From Trichosphaerium sp. ATCC 40318 (Eukaryota; Protista; Tubulinea), in contig JALMLS010000228.1 in NCBI GenBank assembly GCA_038496445.1, forward strand, positions 310,001 through 374,000: a stretch of DNA of 64,000 bases. Reading direction: 5' to 3'. This document shows, piece after piece, positions 7,526 to 39,929 of this stretch. The notes beneath the pieces were generated by a model that had not been told where the DNA came from, did no database searches, and was given only the letters and a program-made list of their open reading frames with translations. Position 1 is the stretch's first letter. Each line of letters opens with the position of its first letter. The translations under genes were made by a program, and so were the position numbers.

Positions 7526-9374
7526 TTAATGTATTATGTTGCCACCGAGTGAGAAAATACCTGATGGCTTGATTCTCTCCATACTTTGCCAAAAAGGAAT
7601 ACCTGGTTCAGACTGTGACATATATCCTTTCTGGAGAGAACCATGGATGTAATTGCCATCAAAGGTCAGGAAACCATTTCTGGTCCATTGTTTTTCACGT
7701 CCATGTTTCTTGCCTTCCTTGTAGTTGGTTTGCTCATTCAACTGACCGCTTTCATACCACCTTGTGTGTTCTCCTTCTTCTTTGCCGTTATCAAAAGAAG
7801 CTTGTATCTCTAATTGGCCGTTGGAGTGCCACACTCTTATTTCTCCGTGTAATTTGTTGTTGACAAAGTTGGCCTTTTGCTCCAGTTGGCCATTGTCATG
7901 CCACTTGATCAGCTTGCCTTCTAGCTCACCTTTGTCAAATTCACCAATCATCTTTACCTTCCCGTTGGCATGCCACTTCTTCAGTTCTCCATTTATTTGA
8001 CCATAAATGCATTGAGAAAAAGAGTCTAGCCGTCTTAGTCTGATTGTAGCATTTTGTTGTGAAGCACGTGAGGAGTAACAGTGTAATTTTGAGTGACTAT
8101 TGCTGTATGACGGCCTGTGATATGATTCTTTTGTTCTGTCATCCACAAAATTATACTCTACTTCCAATTGACCATTTGAATGCCAAGCCCTGTGATTTCC
8201 AGACAACCGACCAAGGACATAATTACTTTGCAGTTCAAGTTGGCCGTTGATATGCCATTTCTTGAGCTCACCATGTATCTCATCAAAGAGACAATAGCAT
8301 TGAATATTTACTTCGCCAGTCTCATACCATTCCTTGTACTCTCCGAGTTGTTTTTCTTCAGTGAAATACCTCTTTGCTTCCACTTTCCCACTCTTAAACC
8401 ATTGAGTGGTTATTCCTTTCGGTTTGCCGTCCTCAAAGTGTTGAGATAGTTTTAGTTGTCCATCATCATACCATTCTTTAAGCTCTCCTTCAATTTTACC
8501 ATTTGAGTACTGACATTGCTCTTCCAATTGGCCGTTCTGATACCAAGAACGGTAAAGCCCATCGCGGTTTTTGGGAGAGAAGCTACAGTGTGAAGACAAG
8601 TGACCGTTTTTATACCAAGATTTGCAAATTCTATGCGATTTACCAGAACGATGTCCATGTTTGTCCTCTTCAACCTCAATCTTACTTGAGAAGTGAGATT
8701 GTGTCATCAGCTGCCCGTTCTTGAACCAATGGCTGAACTTGCCATCACGTTGTCCGTGATCATAGTTGCTCTCTTCCATCAGTTGCCCATTATACCAAAC
8801 CCTGTGCTCGCCATGTAGTTCCTCCTCGAAATAGGTGCCTTTCTCTAACATTACGCCACTTTTGTCCCACTTTTCAAACCCTCCATGCATGAGGCCATCA
8901 GAGTATGTCATGCGCTTTAACATTGTTCCATTTTCGTGCCAAGACTTGAATTCTCCGTCAAGCTTGCCATTTTTGTAGGTACAATCCTCCACTAGTTGGG
9001 TTGCATGCCACTTTTTAAACTCCCCATGCTTTACACCGTGCATCCAACTCTCTTTGAGTACAATCTGTGATTTCGAATTTGTACTATCATTCTCGCTTTT
9101 GACAACTTTACGTTTTTCCCATTCCCCGTGTCGTTTCCACTTGTCGTCAAATCTGGTGGTCGTTGCCGTATGCTTAGATAACAAAGGCCACTTTAAGGAA
9201 ACTTCAGTGTCCAGATCGACTATCTCCAGTTGCAATTCGAGTGGAAGTCTCAGCAGTAGTTGCTTAGAGCTATCTATCGTTGGTTCGTTGGTCTATTGAT
9301 GCGATTAATGACTGATATAATCTTGTGCGTTGATTAATAAGTAATCGTACCTTTGTTAAAGTAGGAGGTTCCAT
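7526..9374 (-). CDS. F-box-like + MORN-variant (MORN_2/YwqK-type) repeat protein
   Basis: Roughly 20 repeats of type G.L.G.(F/Y)K.W(H/Y).NGQL; frame extends upstream of the listed ORF to LLLRLPLELQLEIVDLD (F-box-like); short first exon MEPPTLTK (ATG 9374) joined by a phase-0 GTACGA..AG intron. Confidence 0.85.
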
Positions 9375-17497: not shown

Positions 17498-20400
17498 ATG
17501 CGCGCTTGTTTACTACTTTGCGCGCTCTTGGTTATGGTAGCCATGGTAAACGGTGCCTCAAGGCCTACTGAGTCCGTACCTAACTGTGATGCTGCTTCTC
17601 CTGACTGGGGATGTCCTCCTGGTGATTACAGAGTATTCGGAAACGGTAGAGTCGACAGACTCACTTGTAGAAAGCAACCAGAGCCTCGTATGTCTTGGGC
17701 CACAAAAGTAGTTCGCAGCAATGCCTACAGCACTTGGGCTGGTAACGAAGACGATAAAAAGCGCGAATACGTTCCTGACATGGTCATGGACATAAGTATT
17801 CGTGTCAACAACTACGCTTTCAAATACCGCGGTATTCTCATCTATGCTCAAGATGCGGGTGGTAACAGAGTTGGTGAATGGCTTCTACCAGATGAAACGA
17901 ATCGTAAGCGTACCAGAAAAAGTTCTTTTCATTTTCTGAAAACTAATGTGATTCATGACCTTTTTGGCTTTTTTTGTTGTGGTTTATTTTCTGACTCTTT
18001 TGTAGCATTCTTTCAATTGCCTTGGCCTAATACACACGTGTGTCGCCAAAGTATTACACACAACAGCGCTGAAATCAAGCCTCTTAAGTCAACATGGAAG
18101 TGGAAGGCTCCGGCAAGAGGAACAGGAGCAGTAACTTTTCACTGTTTGATTAAGCAAGGTGATGCCAATACTGGCGCCTTTTATTGGCCAAACAACGGTG
18201 GCGCTGGTCCACTCAAACTCACAGAATCAAGAAGCGGTAAACCACGTCAAACATGGTTTCAATCCAACGTAAGCGTTTTTCTTTTTACTTTTTCTTTTTT
18301 AAATGTTGTTCCCTCACTAATGTTTCTTCTTAGAGAGGTCAATCTTGTACTGATAGATGTGCTGAAGAGAATCTCCAATGTGATGTCGTCCATATGGAGC
18401 GTGTTAACAGCCCAACGAGAATCGAACAGCTCATTATTCCACAAAGTTTCCCTTGCAAACTTCCATATGTCAGCGGATGTAGCAACAAAGGAGCTACAAT
18501 GGGCACTGATGGCCTTTGCTATTTTGACGATACAAGATGTGCATCACAAGGACGTAATACAGGAAGAGTTACCTGTGACTCCAGAAGCGGTGATACAAGA
18601 ATCGGGTATGCTACACTCAAAGTCAAACCGTTTTGCTTTTTTTAAATTCGGGTTTCTTTGAACTTACCTTCTTTGTTAGACTTCGTATGTGCAAATGTCT
18701 TGCAAATACTCTTCCACCTGCCAACCCAGGCAATACTGTTATTGCCGCAAGAGGTGCAACCTCACCTGCAACAAAATCGACAACATCATTCTTGTTCATG
18801 GCTCTCTCTGTCCTCGGTTTGACAATGCGTTCTTCTGGAAAAATGACAACTTCAGTTGTCTTGGCTCTCTTCCTCATTGCTTTGGTTTCCTTCCCTACCA
18901 CTCAAGCTCACAACTGGCAATTTGGAATTGGTAGAAGCGCAGATATTGCTAGTACCCAAACACCATGTCCATCCAGAAGCCAAGCTTCTCCTCACGTTCA
19001 AGTCGGTCCAGGACAACGTTTTGAAATTGAGTGGGCTGTTGGTCATACACACCCTTCATACTACGTTATCGTCAAAGCAGAAGATGAACCAAGACTCAGA
19101 GAAGTTACTTTTGACTCCATGGAGACGTACCTCAATGAAGCATCAAATGGAGACTGCCAAAACTTGCCTGTATACCACAGACAATTCAGAGCTCGTGATG
19201 CTGGTTTTAATGCTTTCTTACAATACTACAGCGGAGCGATCCCTAAAACCTCTCCAAATTTCATCCCCAGACCAGAAGCCTTCGGTGTTTGGGCAGATGA
19301 TGCTACATTGTTCGGATACAAGGACAACCTAGAAGTAAGAAACTACTGCGAATACAGAAATAGCAAGATGCCTTTCGTTAGAGGTATATTCAAGTTTGAA
19401 CATTTTGCACACAGAGCTCAAGACGCCGACATGGTCAGACTTCGAGTTCCTGCCGGATCTGAGTTTGGTGCTTATGTTGTACAATGGCTATGGAGAGGAT
19501 ACAGAGATTGTATTGACCTTGACTACGTCAACAGACAAGTTAAAGATATCTATGGTCTACCAAACCCTGATGGTGGTTTCACGTACGTTCACTTTTCTTG
19601 TTTTTTCTCTTCACATGTGTTTTCTCACGTGCCAATTCTTTTTTTTAATACTAATTTATCACATTAATTAACTTGATTTTTAGTCGTATTGATCACTGTT
19701 ATTTCCCTGATCTCCGTGAAGTTTTTGGTAAGTTGTTTTTACTTAATAACTGCGTTGCATGTACTTCTTACTAACATGCTCATGTAGATTGTCACAGAAT
19801 TTACAACGATGCTAGTGTTTGCGCTAGACAATGTGAACAGAGACAAGGTGGATGTGAAGGATATATTGTCATGCCTCGATTCCCTGAAGCAAACCAATAC
19901 AACGGGCAAGCTAATCTCCTTCCTCAGCTTTGCAAAGATGTTGTAGTCAACATCGGCGCTGACTGGCAAACATCTGACGTTTGCTTTACTGTCCGTGCTC
20001 GTTTGGCTTCCGAAACCTTCGGTCTAACAGAAATCGTACATGCCGGAGATCCAGCCTACCACTCGACATGTTATTTGAAGGGATCAGGACGTCTATTTAC
20101 CGACTTTGAAATCCCACCTCTACATCAAGATATCCCATGGAGACACGGAGATGAGTGCATTTCTTGTGATGCTGCGAACCTTAACAAAAACATCACACGT
20201 ATTCCTAAATGGCCTATGACAAACGACTGTAGAAACTGCGACTTGGAACCAAAGACTGATACACCTCCATTCAATCCACCTCAACTCATCCTCAAACAAG
20301 CCGGCATGTTCTGTGACGGTTTCTACGGATTCTGGTTCAACCTTGGAGGTGGCGTAAGACACCACACATGCAACAACGGTGCTGAAGGTACATGCCATAA

Positions 20401-20662
20401 AGAAGTACTCATTAGAGGACGTATTGCCAACTGGAATCAATGGCATTTCCCTGGAGAATGTGCAGCTGCCGCTTCACTAGATCCAGAGTGTTCTGATGAT
20501 ATCTACACTCTAGACTTGACATTTCTCACATACAGAGACCAAATGGCAGTTAGATGTTGGTGTATTCGAAAACAAAGCTGTTGTAATGGGTGCAGACCAA
20601 CAGATCCTGGAACTGACTCTCACATGTGGAATATATGGACACTTGATCGTGGTACATCATAA
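17498..20662 (+). CDS. Secreted multidomain protein: signal peptide - reeler domain - Cys-rich module - hydrophobic anchor - internal signal peptide - LPMO-like His-brace domain - Cys-rich C-terminus
   Basis: SP MRACLLLCALLVMVAMVNG; reeler motifs EYVPD..ISIRV..FKYRGILIYAQD..RVGEW, SITHNSAEIK..WKWKAP..GTGAVTFH; GQSCTDRC..C..RMCKC module; MTTSVVLALFLIALVSFPTTQA|HNW...EIEWAVGHTH...YVVQWLWRGYRDCID; five GT-AG introns, upstream three checked for frame. Confidence 0.8.
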
Positions 20663-24321: not shown

Positions 24322-25680
24322 TTAAAGGCTCGATTCTTCATTGTAGTTGAATTCTTCACCTTCGTTCTCTAAATCATCAAGTTCTTCTTCAAATGGGTCT
24401 TCATTCATGAGTTCGCTTTCTAATTCATCAAGCAATTGTTCGTCTTCACTGTACTCTTGTTCAAAAGCGTCTTCATTGCTTTCAGCGTGCGCTTCATCAT
24501 CAACACTTTCGTACTCTTTCCCATTGAAAGGATCAAATGCTTCTTCATTGCCTTCGACAACGTCACCATCGTCAAGTTCCTCTTGCTCTGTATTTTCAAA
24601 TTCATACTCCTTTCCATTGAAAGGATCAAAGGCTTCTTCATTACCTTCAAATACTTCTCCGTTATCAATTTCGTCATATTCTTGTTCCAAAGCTTCTTTG
24701 TTACCTTCAGCATGCTCTTGATCACCAACACTTTCATACTCTTTTCCATTGAAAGGATCAAAGCCTTCTTCATTGCCTTCAAAAACTTCTCCGTCTTCAA
24801 CTTCTTCATACTCTTCTTCGTCTACAGGTTCTTCACTTTCTTCGAGCACGTCTTCTGGCATGTAGTTGTCGTCAACAAACATCTCTTCTTCATCCATGTC
24901 GTTTTGTTCTGGTTCCTCTTCTTCATCAAAAACGGTCTCCTCATCTAAGCTCTCCCAATCTTCATCTGGTTGGATCTCATTTCTGTCTTCTTCATCCTCA
25001 ACGCTTCTTCCACCGTTCACACGTCCGATTCTATCGCGAAGCTTACCAATATGGTCCATTACATCTCCAACACGCTCATTCCACGCACTTTGATCGTCGA
25101 AAACCAAAAATGCGCAAGTACGTATGATTGTCATCTCTTCTACGTCTTCTACAAGAGCCCGAACAGCTTTTTGGCATCCTTCTTCATCTTGGTCTGCAAC
25201 TGCAGTAGGAAGTGCGACAATGTTACGGTAATATTGTTTAAACCAGTCCTTAGCCTTGTTTAGCTTCTGTTTCACGGCGAATTTGAAACCATCGATCATT
25301 TCAAGTCCCTTTTGTTGTAATTCCTCTATAGACATTTGAACGCGTTCTTTGAGCTGGTCGGTTTTGTCTATAAGCCTGTCTCTTTGGTTTTCGAAGGTTT
25401 CGCGTGCACTATCTCCCAAACGTTGTGTACGATCCTTTACAGCGCCTGTGAAGTCGTCTCTTCGTTGCTTGATGTATTGCTGTGCATTGTCTCTAGTACG
25501 AGCGGCACCGCTTTTAATAGTGTCTATACCGCCTTCGTATTTGTCTCGCAAGTAGTCTTCAACTTGTTGCTTTTTGAGCTCTGCACGCCTTTGTTGTCTC
25601 TCAATGTTATCCCGTATAGAATATCTTGCGCACACAATGGCAAATAGTGCAACTAGCACTAGCAGAGTAGACGTACGCAT
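24322..25680 (-). CDS. Intronless secreted protein: LEA/apolipophorin-like helical N-half and highly acidic repetitive C-half
   Basis: 452-aa ORF; SP MRTSTLLVLVALFAIVCA; three copies of EGNEE(G/A)FDPFNGKEYE. Confidence 0.85.
   Translation of the reverse strand: MRTSTLLVLVALFAIVCARYSIRDNIERQQRRAELKKQQVEDYLRDKYEGGIDTIKSGAARTRDNAQQYIKQRRDDFTGAVKDRTQRLGDSARETFENQRDRLIDKTDQLKERVQMSIEELQQKGLEMIDGFKFAVKQKLNKAKDWFKQYYRNIVALPTAVADQDEEGCQKAVRALVEDVEEMTIIRTCAFLVFDDQSAWNERVGDVMDHIGKLRDRIGRVNGGRSVEDEEDRNEIQPDEDWESLDEETVFDEEEEPEQNDMDEEEMFVDDNYMPEDVLEESEEPVDEEEYEEVEDGEVFEGNEEGFDPFNGKEYESVGDQEHAEGNKEALEQEYDEIDNGEVFEGNEEAFDPFNGKEYEFENTEQEELDDGDVVEGNEEAFDPFNGKEYESVDDEAHAESNEDAFEQEYSEDEQLLDELESELMNEDPFEEELDDLENEGEEFNYNEESSL
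24450..24820 (-). repeat. Coding repeat, 3 copies of the EGNEExFDPFNGKEYE unit with related spacers
   Basis: ccattgaaaggatcaaa recurs near 24522, 24614 and 24746. Confidence 0.85.
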
Positions 25681-37239: not shown

Positions 37240-39929
37240 ATGCATCTCTTCAAAGCATCTATCGTAACACTATTATTTATCGCGCTATCTGCCTTTGCTG
37301 TTAAGTTTTCGAACGTTGCGCTTCATAATGACCTCTCTTCGTTCATCCATCATCCTCATCGCACTGCCACTGAAGGATATGAGCCCGTAAAGGTACTAAA
37401 TTAAAGCTACATGTAGTTTTAAATCAAGTTTTTGCTGTTGACTATTCTAATAAAATTTGACATTTAGACAGCTCCTGGTGCTCCGTACCCTTTCGCTTCC
37501 AGACCGCAGTTTCCTGGTGAAGAAGATTTACCTTACGCACCTGTGAAGGGATATGGGAGGAACGGAGCTATATTGATCGATTTCGACGGTGACGGAGATT
37601 TGGATATCTACTTAACAGATGCATACCAAAATGACAACAAGTTGTTTATCAACCTCCTCAAAGAGGTACGCTATTGTTTTTTGCTAACTGTGATCTCTGC
37701 GTCTTACTCTATTTAGTGTGGGAGCATGCAATTTGATGATATAACATCGGAGATGGGTGACGTTGGACTAAATGATCACGACTCAGCTGCCTTGTGCTTC
37801 GGTGATATGAACAATGACGGATTGGATGATATTGTAGTTATGGGACATGATTCTAACGAAGAATCTGGAATACGTCTTCTACAGTAAGTAACATACACAA
37901 AACTATTAATAGCTCACTTTTGGTAACAGAGGTGTGAAACGCTCTAGAAAAGGGAAAAAAATGAGAAAAGGAAACTGTAGATACACTCTGTACTCAACTT
38001 TCAGTGACGTTTCAGAAAGATCAGGTGTTAAAACTCCTGGGTATGAATCATACACGCCTTCTGGTTGTACAGTTGCAGATTTTGACGGTGACGGTAAACT
38101 TGATATCTACGCTTCTACTTTATGGTTCAATATGAGTGACGGTTCATTGATTTTCAACGATGTTCAACCTCGGTTGACTCATAACATGCTATTTATGCAG
38201 TCTTCCTTGCCGCTAGTTTTCACAGAAGAAGCTGGACCTCTTGGACTCCAAAATCAAGAACTAAAGGGTATCACATGGGCTGTTGGTGCCGCAGATTTCG
38301 ATGGAGATGGTGATGTAGATATTTTCGCTTCTGAAGATCAAGGAGCTATGTTTGCAACAAGTGCGACTGTTTTTGTACTATTGATTGTACTAACTCCTGT
38401 TTCAAGCTGTTAGCCAAGAATTTGGTCTTGATAGAGGCTACCTTCGCGTATTTAAGAATAGGCTCGTTGAAGACGGTGAACTAAGCTTTCAAGACATCAC
38501 CCTTGATATGGGTATTCCTCCAGCGGATTATATGTCTGTTAGCTTCGGAGATTTAAACTGTGATAGTACGATATGCCATTCCTTTTCTGTTTTTTTTCTT
38601 CGTAGTTGTGATGGTCTTCTTACCTTTTGTATTTAGCTAAAACGGATATATTTTATTCACTGTTTGGTGACTATGGTCAAGTTGATAATATTCCAGCTTT
38701 TGCACCATACACTCAACCAGCTGAAACAAGCCGATGGCGGTATTTTGATGGAACAACTTTCAAAGATTCTTGGGAATCAACACCACGTATTGGTGGCGTA
38801 ATCTCAACTCCTTTCGGCTGGGGATCGACTCTAGTAGACTATGATAATGACGCTGACATGGACATTATATTCAACGGAGGCATCCATGTAGGAAGATTCA
38901 TTGACTTCAGTCCTGGAGCTGTTCTTGAAAACCAAGGATGTCGTTCAGGTCAAGACTCGTTTAATACCCTTTTTGAACGTGATGTGGGAGCCTACAGTAC
39001 AGTAGAAAACGGAGGTAACCCTTTTACAAGCGAGATGATAAACTGTGTGATTTCAGGGGACTTGGACAATGACGGGTTTAATGACCTTCTTCTAACTTCT
39101 AGTTTCGCTGCTCCACCTGAAGCGCCATACTCATTATACACCGCTGATTTGAATATTGGTAATGGGAGCCCTCAGTTTCCTGTTTCAGATTATACCGGAT
39201 CTTCTTTTAACGATGACTATGGTAAATGGATAAACTGGGAAGTAGTTGATCCTACTGATCCTGATCCTCAAGATTTCACTTGGAAAGGTATAGATGAGAT
39301 TCCAGAAGGACGAGTTTTCCTCTTGAAGAATGATGGTGATGTGCCACACAGTAAGTATTGTGCAACTATAGTTCTAGTATTAACTGAATTTATTAGAAGG
39401 GCGATCTGTTCGGGTTACGGCTGTAGGAACAATTGGTATTGTACCTTCTGGTTGTGTCAACAGAAATGGTATCGGTGCTGTTGTTGTTGTCAAGCCAAGG
39501 AAAAACCAATACGAATTAGCTAATTTTGCTTATTCGAAGCCTATTGTTGGTGGTTCAGGATTTGCAGGACAAGATGGATTGGCAAAGACTCTCGGGATTA
39601 AAAATGCGAAGTACACAAACATTGAAATAAGATGGCCAAGTCCAAATGGTGTTCTCACGAATGAACTGAAATGTGTAGAGCATGGCGAAGATATAATCTT
39701 TCCTGAGATACCATGTGATATCACACACAATAGATGTCCATCTGGGAGCCCACTAGAAGGATTTTATTCCTTTAGATCTTGTATTCTAAACAATATTAAC
39801 TCGCTAAGAAGATCAAAAGTACTTGGTGGAAAAGAAGCATCTTTATTCTATAAACGTATGTGTAACGCTTTCTTAGAGAGACATGGTATCCATAGAAATT
39901 GGTTGTGTCCTTCAATAAACTGTAACTAA
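37240..39929 (+). CDS. Secreted FG-GAP/VCBS repeat protein with ASPIC/UnbV-like C-terminal domain (CRTAC1-like)
   Basis: SP MHLFKASIVTLLFIALSAFA; repeats IDFDGDGDLDIYL, GDMNNDGLDDIVV, ADFDGDGKLDIYA, DYDNDADMDI, GDLDNDGFNDLL; NRNGIGAVVVV..GGSGFAGQD..IEIRWPS. Confidence 0.88.

Follow-up and report, generated by a model that had tools for sequence, protein, structure and literature searches.

The window analysed here is a 64,000-nucleotide stretch of contig JALMLS010000228.1 from the tubulinean amoeba Trichosphaerium sp. ATCC 40318, with a G+C content of ~37 % and short GT-AG introns which mark it as eukaryotic. On its forward strand we identified a six-exon gene (17498-20662) encoding a precursor of 920 amino acids, which contains the only copy within the 64 kb of a domain resembling the lytic polysaccharide monooxygenases (LPMOs). 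This LPMO-like domain occupies precursor residues 391-615, its first residue, the histidine H1, being residue 391. It is preceded, in order, by a signal peptide, a Reeler-like module, a cysteine-rich module, a linker, a hydrophobic stretch, a loop of sequence RSSGK and an internal signal peptide that runs directly up to the histidine, and is followed by an RxDHC module and a PAN/apple-like end. A new gene model was sought since in most relatives the residue equivalent to H1 lies 200-900 residues deep in the protein.

Exon 1 (17498-17903) carries the start codon (ATG at 17498), the N-terminal signal peptide and the first half of the Reeler-like module, with a GT donor at 17904 and homology to the N-termini of the relatives P0001-P0007. 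The second half of this module, including the invariant His154, is encoded by exon 2 (18006-18268), which has AG and GT borders, and the cysteine-rich module by exon 3 (18334-18605), assigned from its borders and conserved cysteines. Two public runs supply RNA contigs with the joints 17896>18006, 18268>18334 and 18605>18681. Exon 4 (18680-19582) opens with the end of the cysteine-rich module (RMCKC) and a Pro/Thr/Ser-rich linker (18680-18782), the junction RIG-LRMCKC being colinear with RIGYRFCTC of P0005. There follow a first hydrophobic stretch (18783-18827, residues 349-363), a Kyte-Doolittle segment which we propose as a stop-transfer arm; the basic RSSGK loop (18828-18842); a signal-peptide-like segment (18843-18908), assigned from its hydrophobicity and its -3 and -1 residues; and the LPMO-like beta-sandwich domain (18909-19582), delimited using relatives, conservation, AlphaFold and structural neighbours. 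Exon 5, of only 44 nucleotides (19684-19727), has GT-AG borders and contains the RIDHC motif at 19685-19699, and an RNA joint 19582>19787 skips both introns. Intron 5 contains TACTAAC at 19769-19775, ~12 nucleotides 5′ of the AG, which corresponds to the yeast-type branch-point consensus. Exon 6 (19788-20662, stop codon 20660-20662) encodes a cysteine-rich middle module and the C-terminal PAN/apple-like domain (~20297-20644).

The spliced product has no internal stop and all introns are GT-AG. It aligns as a single high-scoring segment pair with five full-length transcript-derived homologues, residues 1-898 showing 31 % identity to residues 1-880 of P0002 (E 4e-138). A 696-nucleotide RNA contig spans 18065-18895, leading from the Reeler/cysteine-rich part into the signal-like segment just before the histidine.

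The initial annotation, made from the letters of the window, had described a divergent LPMO-like domain at 18909-19530, possibly of a new family, defined by the motif order H1, R..PC, V.PGQ.FEIEW.VGH(T)H, a long insert and a terminal VRLRVP stretch. Translation of 18843-19583 (+) yields a hydrophobic signal-like stretch ending in TTQA followed by HNW, and every one of these motifs was found in the order and at the coordinates claimed. The H1 codon lies at 18909-18911, with R9 and then P19-C20 downstream (C20 at 18966-18968). The VGPGQRFEIEW-AVGH-T-H stretch provides H46 (19044-19046) and H48 (19050-19052), and the stretch VRLRVP..GAYVVQWLWRGYRDCID, ending WLWRGYRDCID, provides Y198 (19500-19502) and C201 (19509-19511). 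The methionine at 18843 is internal to the longer reading frame and is not a demonstrated start codon, and the beginning of the domain is not the beginning of the gene.

To identify relatives we searched 1.84 billion representative proteins in full with HMMER, utilizing the 225-residue domain as query. At E ≤ 1e-3 this returned 365 relatives, of which 166 also pass E ≤ 1e-10 and the best has an E-value of 1.4e-32 and 38 % identity to the window domain, a recurrence well beyond what chance would give. Named sources include the tubulinean amoebae Flabellula baltica and Rhizamoeba saxonica, the acantharian Phyllostaurus siculus and one MMETSP transcriptome, the remainder being metatranscriptome or metagenome contigs. 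Most relatives are 900-1400 amino acids long. A profile search for homologous proteins added few relatives and no LPMO annotations. We refer to this group as the HNW family. The window domain has no Pfam match at E ≤ 1, and among 105 family members no match to LPMO_10 (PF03067) was found and only three sub-threshold matches to AA9 (PF03443), the best with E 0.025; BIM1-like_dom (PF20238) is likewise absent from the Pfam families matched by these members. Given that neither a Pfam model nor a PDB sequence profile matches it, the suggestion of a new family is supported. Literature searches returned no account of such a family, nor of such proteins in amoebae or protists. AA18 was also checked and set aside, being a separately defined family. 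Our data support an LPMO-like family that had not been classified before and whose protist hosts include tubulinean amoebae, acantharians and marine plankton.

Conservation was assessed in an alignment of 105 domains, each 26-36 % identical to the window copy. H1, R9, H46 and Y74 are invariant, and conservation of at least 90 % extends to N2, W3, P19, D144, Y149, P155, D174, G187, W195, G197, Y198, D200, D203 and G216. The initial annotation had left the second histidine at either 19044 or 19050; H46 is present in all 105 sequences and H48 is not conserved, which makes H46 the family histidine. It had also read the following ~110 residues as an atypical insert. This region does exist, as a subdomain of ~100-110 residues with helices and strands which holds the invariant Y74 and the conserved Y149, P155 and D174; since it is conserved family-wide, it is part of the domain and not an insertion specific to the window copy. 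The tyrosine of GYRDCID had been put forward as the axial residue, a proposal with which in silico conservation agrees, position 198 being Tyr in 101 sequences and Phe in four and lying where the last long strand of the structural model begins. Alternation between Tyr and Phe is known at the axial position of described LPMOs. C20 and C201 co-vary, both being present in 86 sequences, neither in 16 and only one in three, which indicates a Cys20-Cys201 disulfide linking the N-terminal segment to the Tyr198 strand, a link that lends indirect support to a putative metal site shared by H1, H46 and Tyr198. The window copy retains all of these residues but departs from the majority of the family at position 93.

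An AlphaFold2 model of the window domain, built with the family alignment, is a confidently predicted beta-sandwich (predicted local distance difference test 92.1, predicted template modelling score 0.89), to which the region formerly called the insert contributes two helices and several strands. In an exhaustive structural search LPMO or LPMO-like structures occupied 10 of the top 14 places, drawn from X325, AA15, AA9, AA11, AA13, AA10 and AA16, most of them aligning from residue 1 of the solved chain. The predicted Ig/FnIII-like sandwich can be superposed on solved LPMOs, and together with the invariant H1 and H46 these neighbours support the description as a divergent LPMO-like domain. A second family member also gave a confident beta-sandwich and the same pattern of LPMO-type neighbours. 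Neighbours in language-model space were eukaryotic clusters, partly annotated as LPMO_10. A model over 527 residues points to one rigid body comprising the domain and the C-terminal modules (predicted template modelling score 0.88).

Position of the domain within its precursors was surveyed in 140 relatives with an aligned domain start, in 49 of which it lies directly behind an N-terminal signal and in 91 of which it is internal. A histidine stands at the domain start in 137 of the 140, including 89 of the internal cases. The ten residues ahead of the internal histidine are strongly hydrophobic, and in all 91 the -1 position is A, G or S and the -3 position A, V, S, T, C or G; 48 of the 49 N-terminal cases likewise have a hydrophobic stretch with small -1 and -3 residues. 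A second hydrophobic stretch, equivalent to residues 349-363 of the window precursor, lies just upstream in nearly all of the internal-His relatives, separated by a loop with a median length of ~4 residues which, like RSSGK, is typically short; of 52 relatives scored, 45 have a loop with net positive charge. A methionine falls within positions -30 to -12 in only 39 of the 91 internal cases, so that an internal translation start cannot be the general route to the N-terminal histidine. One open reading frame and transcript, an internal hydrophobic hairpin and a predicted -3/-1 cleavage site are thus all present at the level of sequence. A stop-transfer segment followed by a cytosolic loop, a re-entering signal and a lumenal signal-peptidase site would be expected to look like this. 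According to a recent review, every known class of histidine brace has an N-terminal signal peptide, the removal of which unmasks the copper-binding amine (PMC10952591). We take the conserved, predicted cleavage site in the middle of the protein as the strongest indirect evidence that a free N-terminal histidine matters in this family, and hence that the domain is a histidine brace. Literature searches identified neither a histidine brace behind an internal signal peptide nor any account of maturation by this route.

A Reeler/cysteine-rich module precedes the LPMO-like domain in constant order in 82 of 172 relatives. Exon 1 of the window gene has no Pfam Reeler match; its language-model features lie nearest to Reeler clusters (0.88), and P0003, P0004 and P0030, homologues of the window module at E ≤ 1e-29, do pass the Pfam Reeler model PF02014 (E 7e-7 to 6e-10). 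On these grounds we call the module Reeler-like (residues 21-223; 17498-18268). Among 32 full-length relatives Met65, Trp67, Tyr91, His154 and Lys185 are invariant and Lys160 is kept in 97 %. A Met/His pair ligates haem b in the cytochrome domain of cellobiose dehydrogenase, and by analogy we note the invariant Met/His pair of the Reeler-like module as a lead, rather than a finding, towards a redox-partner role. The literature search turned up no report in which a Reeler domain and an LPMO occur together. On a 20-kb JGI metagenome contig a prokaryote-style gene caller has divided one relative (L001:6001-7802) in two, P0172 being the Reeler protein and P0173 the adjacent LPMO-like piece of 214 amino acids; its neighbourhood includes several thrombospondin type-1 repeat genes and a urease gene. 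In the window sequence and two homologues the cysteine-rich module of exon 3 matched, weakly and below the Pfam threshold, the final ~85 positions of Glyco_transf_18 (GnT-V; E 0.007 to 0.0008). Directly after the LPMO-like domain, a [RK]xDHC motif is present in 124 of 156 relatives, its histidine at least 90 % conserved. The C-terminal ~115 residues are PAN/apple-like, although Pfam searches of the C-terminal parts returned nothing above threshold, and the precursor ends in a hydrophilic tail without a glycosylphosphatidylinositol (GPI)-type signal.

Taken together, sequence and structural model lead us to favour, as probable on balance but far from assured, a copper histidine-brace module which is freed by signal peptidase and oxidatively attacks a glycan in the manner of an LPMO, the attached modules serving in targeting. 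The first signal peptide would bring the Reeler-like and cysteine-rich modules into the lumen of the endoplasmic reticulum (ER), where the first hydrophobic stretch would halt transfer and leave the short basic loop in the cytosol. The second hydrophobic stretch, serving as an internal signal peptide, would then re-enter the membrane and be cut by signal peptidase after TTQA, such that the Reeler part stays held in the membrane and a soluble protein beginning with histidine is set free. One copper ion is predicted to be bound by the amino group and imidazole of His1 together with His46, with Tyr198 below the site and the putative Cys20-Cys201 disulfide tying the N-terminal segment to the tyrosine strand. 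The glycan target could belong to prey or to the cell's own surface, and the rigidly attached RxDHC module and the PAN/apple-like end may be the targeting parts.

Several observations weigh against this enzymatic interpretation, some of which concern function and others the gene model. No sequence profile ties the HNW family to any LPMO, and searches of PDB sequences with phmmer and with the family profile recovered no LPMO and only noise. In a Foldseek search LPMOs were not ranked first. Position 93, a histidine in 86 % of the family, is Phe in the window copy, and the absence of a Gln or Glu two residues ahead of Tyr198, remarked upon in the initial annotation, is confirmed. That absence, the conserved aspartate D200 two residues past the tyrosine and the fact that the top structural match is X325, a copper binder without shown LPMO activity, would also suit a protein of the same fold, brace and processing which is not an enzyme but binds or hands over copper, in the manner of fungal X325/Bim1 or bacterial CopC/PmoF-type proteins. 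We consider such a role somewhat unlikely, as the Pfam BIM1-like model fails to match, the released protein has no C-terminal GPI-type tail, AA15 scores equally with X325 against the window model, and fusion to a PAN/apple-like domain and a large conserved extra module fits a substrate-directed enzyme better than a copper shuttle. A copper-free immunoglobulin-like recognition or adhesion domain, with its conserved histidines structural or binding something else, appears very unlikely, since the near-universal placement of histidine first after a signal-peptidase site is hard to explain unless a free N-terminal histidine matters, and since it would leave aside the invariant second histidine, the Tyr/Phe position and the dominance of LPMO types among the top structural matches.

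The remaining objections bear on the gene model and not on function, and the two-gene reading drawn from them can be combined with either functional reading. In the window copy a methionine stands exactly at the start of the internal signal and a shorter product may arise from an internal start at 18843. The 696-nucleotide junction contig is moreover only ~92 % identical to the window and so derives from a paralogue or a close relative, its junction use being shown for the gene family and not for this locus; no RNA contig of at least 99 % identity crosses the junction. There could accordingly be two genes, an LPMO-like protein with an ordinary signal peptide beginning at that methionine, as in those relatives which carry the domain directly behind an N-terminal signal, and a Reeler protein ending in the first hydrophobic stretch, which with the small residues ahead of it resembles a GPI signal. 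There is however no stop codon between the modules and the frame is kept over a GT-AG intron, the splice from 18605 to 18681 is present in RNA contigs of two runs, which extend beyond it into the signal segment, and the internal histidine lies within one open reading frame in the 91 relatives described above, many of them on transcript-sized contigs and most without a suitably placed methionine, which makes a division into two genes improbable.

A more far-reaching version of the histidine-brace reading, which we put forward as possible though doubtful, would see in these precursors widespread protist polyproteins in which ER signal peptidase, acting at an internal signal, exposes the N-terminal histidine on which a new class of copper histidine-brace enzymes depends and leaves behind an equimolar, membrane-held Reeler partner. 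The cytochrome domain of cellobiose dehydrogenase feeds electrons to fungal LPMOs, and with its invariant Met65 and His154 the Reeler module might by analogy hold a metal or haem and pass electrons to the copper site. If confirmed, the family would add to the LPMO-like proteins a large group from protists which neither Pfam 2025 nor the PDB nor the literature searched contains. It would link histidine-brace proteins to a Reeler-domain partner and, while its brace chemistry would be the usual one, the location of the site in mid-protein behind an internal signal would represent a new maturation route. Such proteins would be candidate oxidative enzymes of phagotrophic protists, and on them the processing of cellular proteins by signal peptidase at internal sites could be tested.

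Elsewhere in the window we noted a single-exon open reading frame of 569 amino acids (7526-9235, minus strand) with many W..NGQL...Y..G..(D/H)G repeats, MORN-like by eye, and one of 452 amino acids (24322-25680, minus strand) whose N-terminus resembles a signal and whose highly acidic C-terminal half holds repeats of GNEEAFDPFNGKEYE. Two further open reading frames (37934-39523, plus strand) contain repeated DFDGDG.(L/V)D motifs of the FG-GAP/VCBS type by eye.

The HNW domain shares with the LPMOs (CAZy families AA9-AA11 and AA13-AA17, the nearest solved being the AA15 enzyme of Thermobia domestica, 5msz) secretion with histidine as the first residue after a signal-peptidase site, here predicted, a second invariant histidine, a Tyr or Phe on the last strand with a disulfide cysteine three positions after it, and a beta-sandwich aligning from residue 1. 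It differs from them in lacking any similarity detectable by hidden Markov model or profile, in placing the second histidine at position 46 and following it with a conserved 100-residue subdomain, in its HNW and R9 signatures and its want of a Gln or Glu at -2 of the tyrosine, and in being usually internal to the precursor with an RxDHC module after it. From the fungal X325/Bim1 proteins (6ibh; PF20238) it is distinguished by the lack of a Pfam match, by its length of 225 rather than 150 residues, by a released part without a GPI tail and by its occurrence in protists and not fungi. The upstream module is likened to Reeler proteins (PF02014, including the Reeler-DOMON-cytochrome b561 proteins) through its Pfam-positive relatives and language-model features, although the window sequence itself falls below Pfam significance. 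Flavivirus and bunyavirus glycoprotein precursors are polyproteins processed by signal peptidase and containing internal signal sequences. As in these viral precursors, a single open reading frame carries proposed stop-transfer and re-entry segments followed by a predicted -3/-1 site between two lumenal products; here however the precursors belong to a cellular gene family of protists, and the predicted cut would also make the metal-binding N-terminus of the downstream product.
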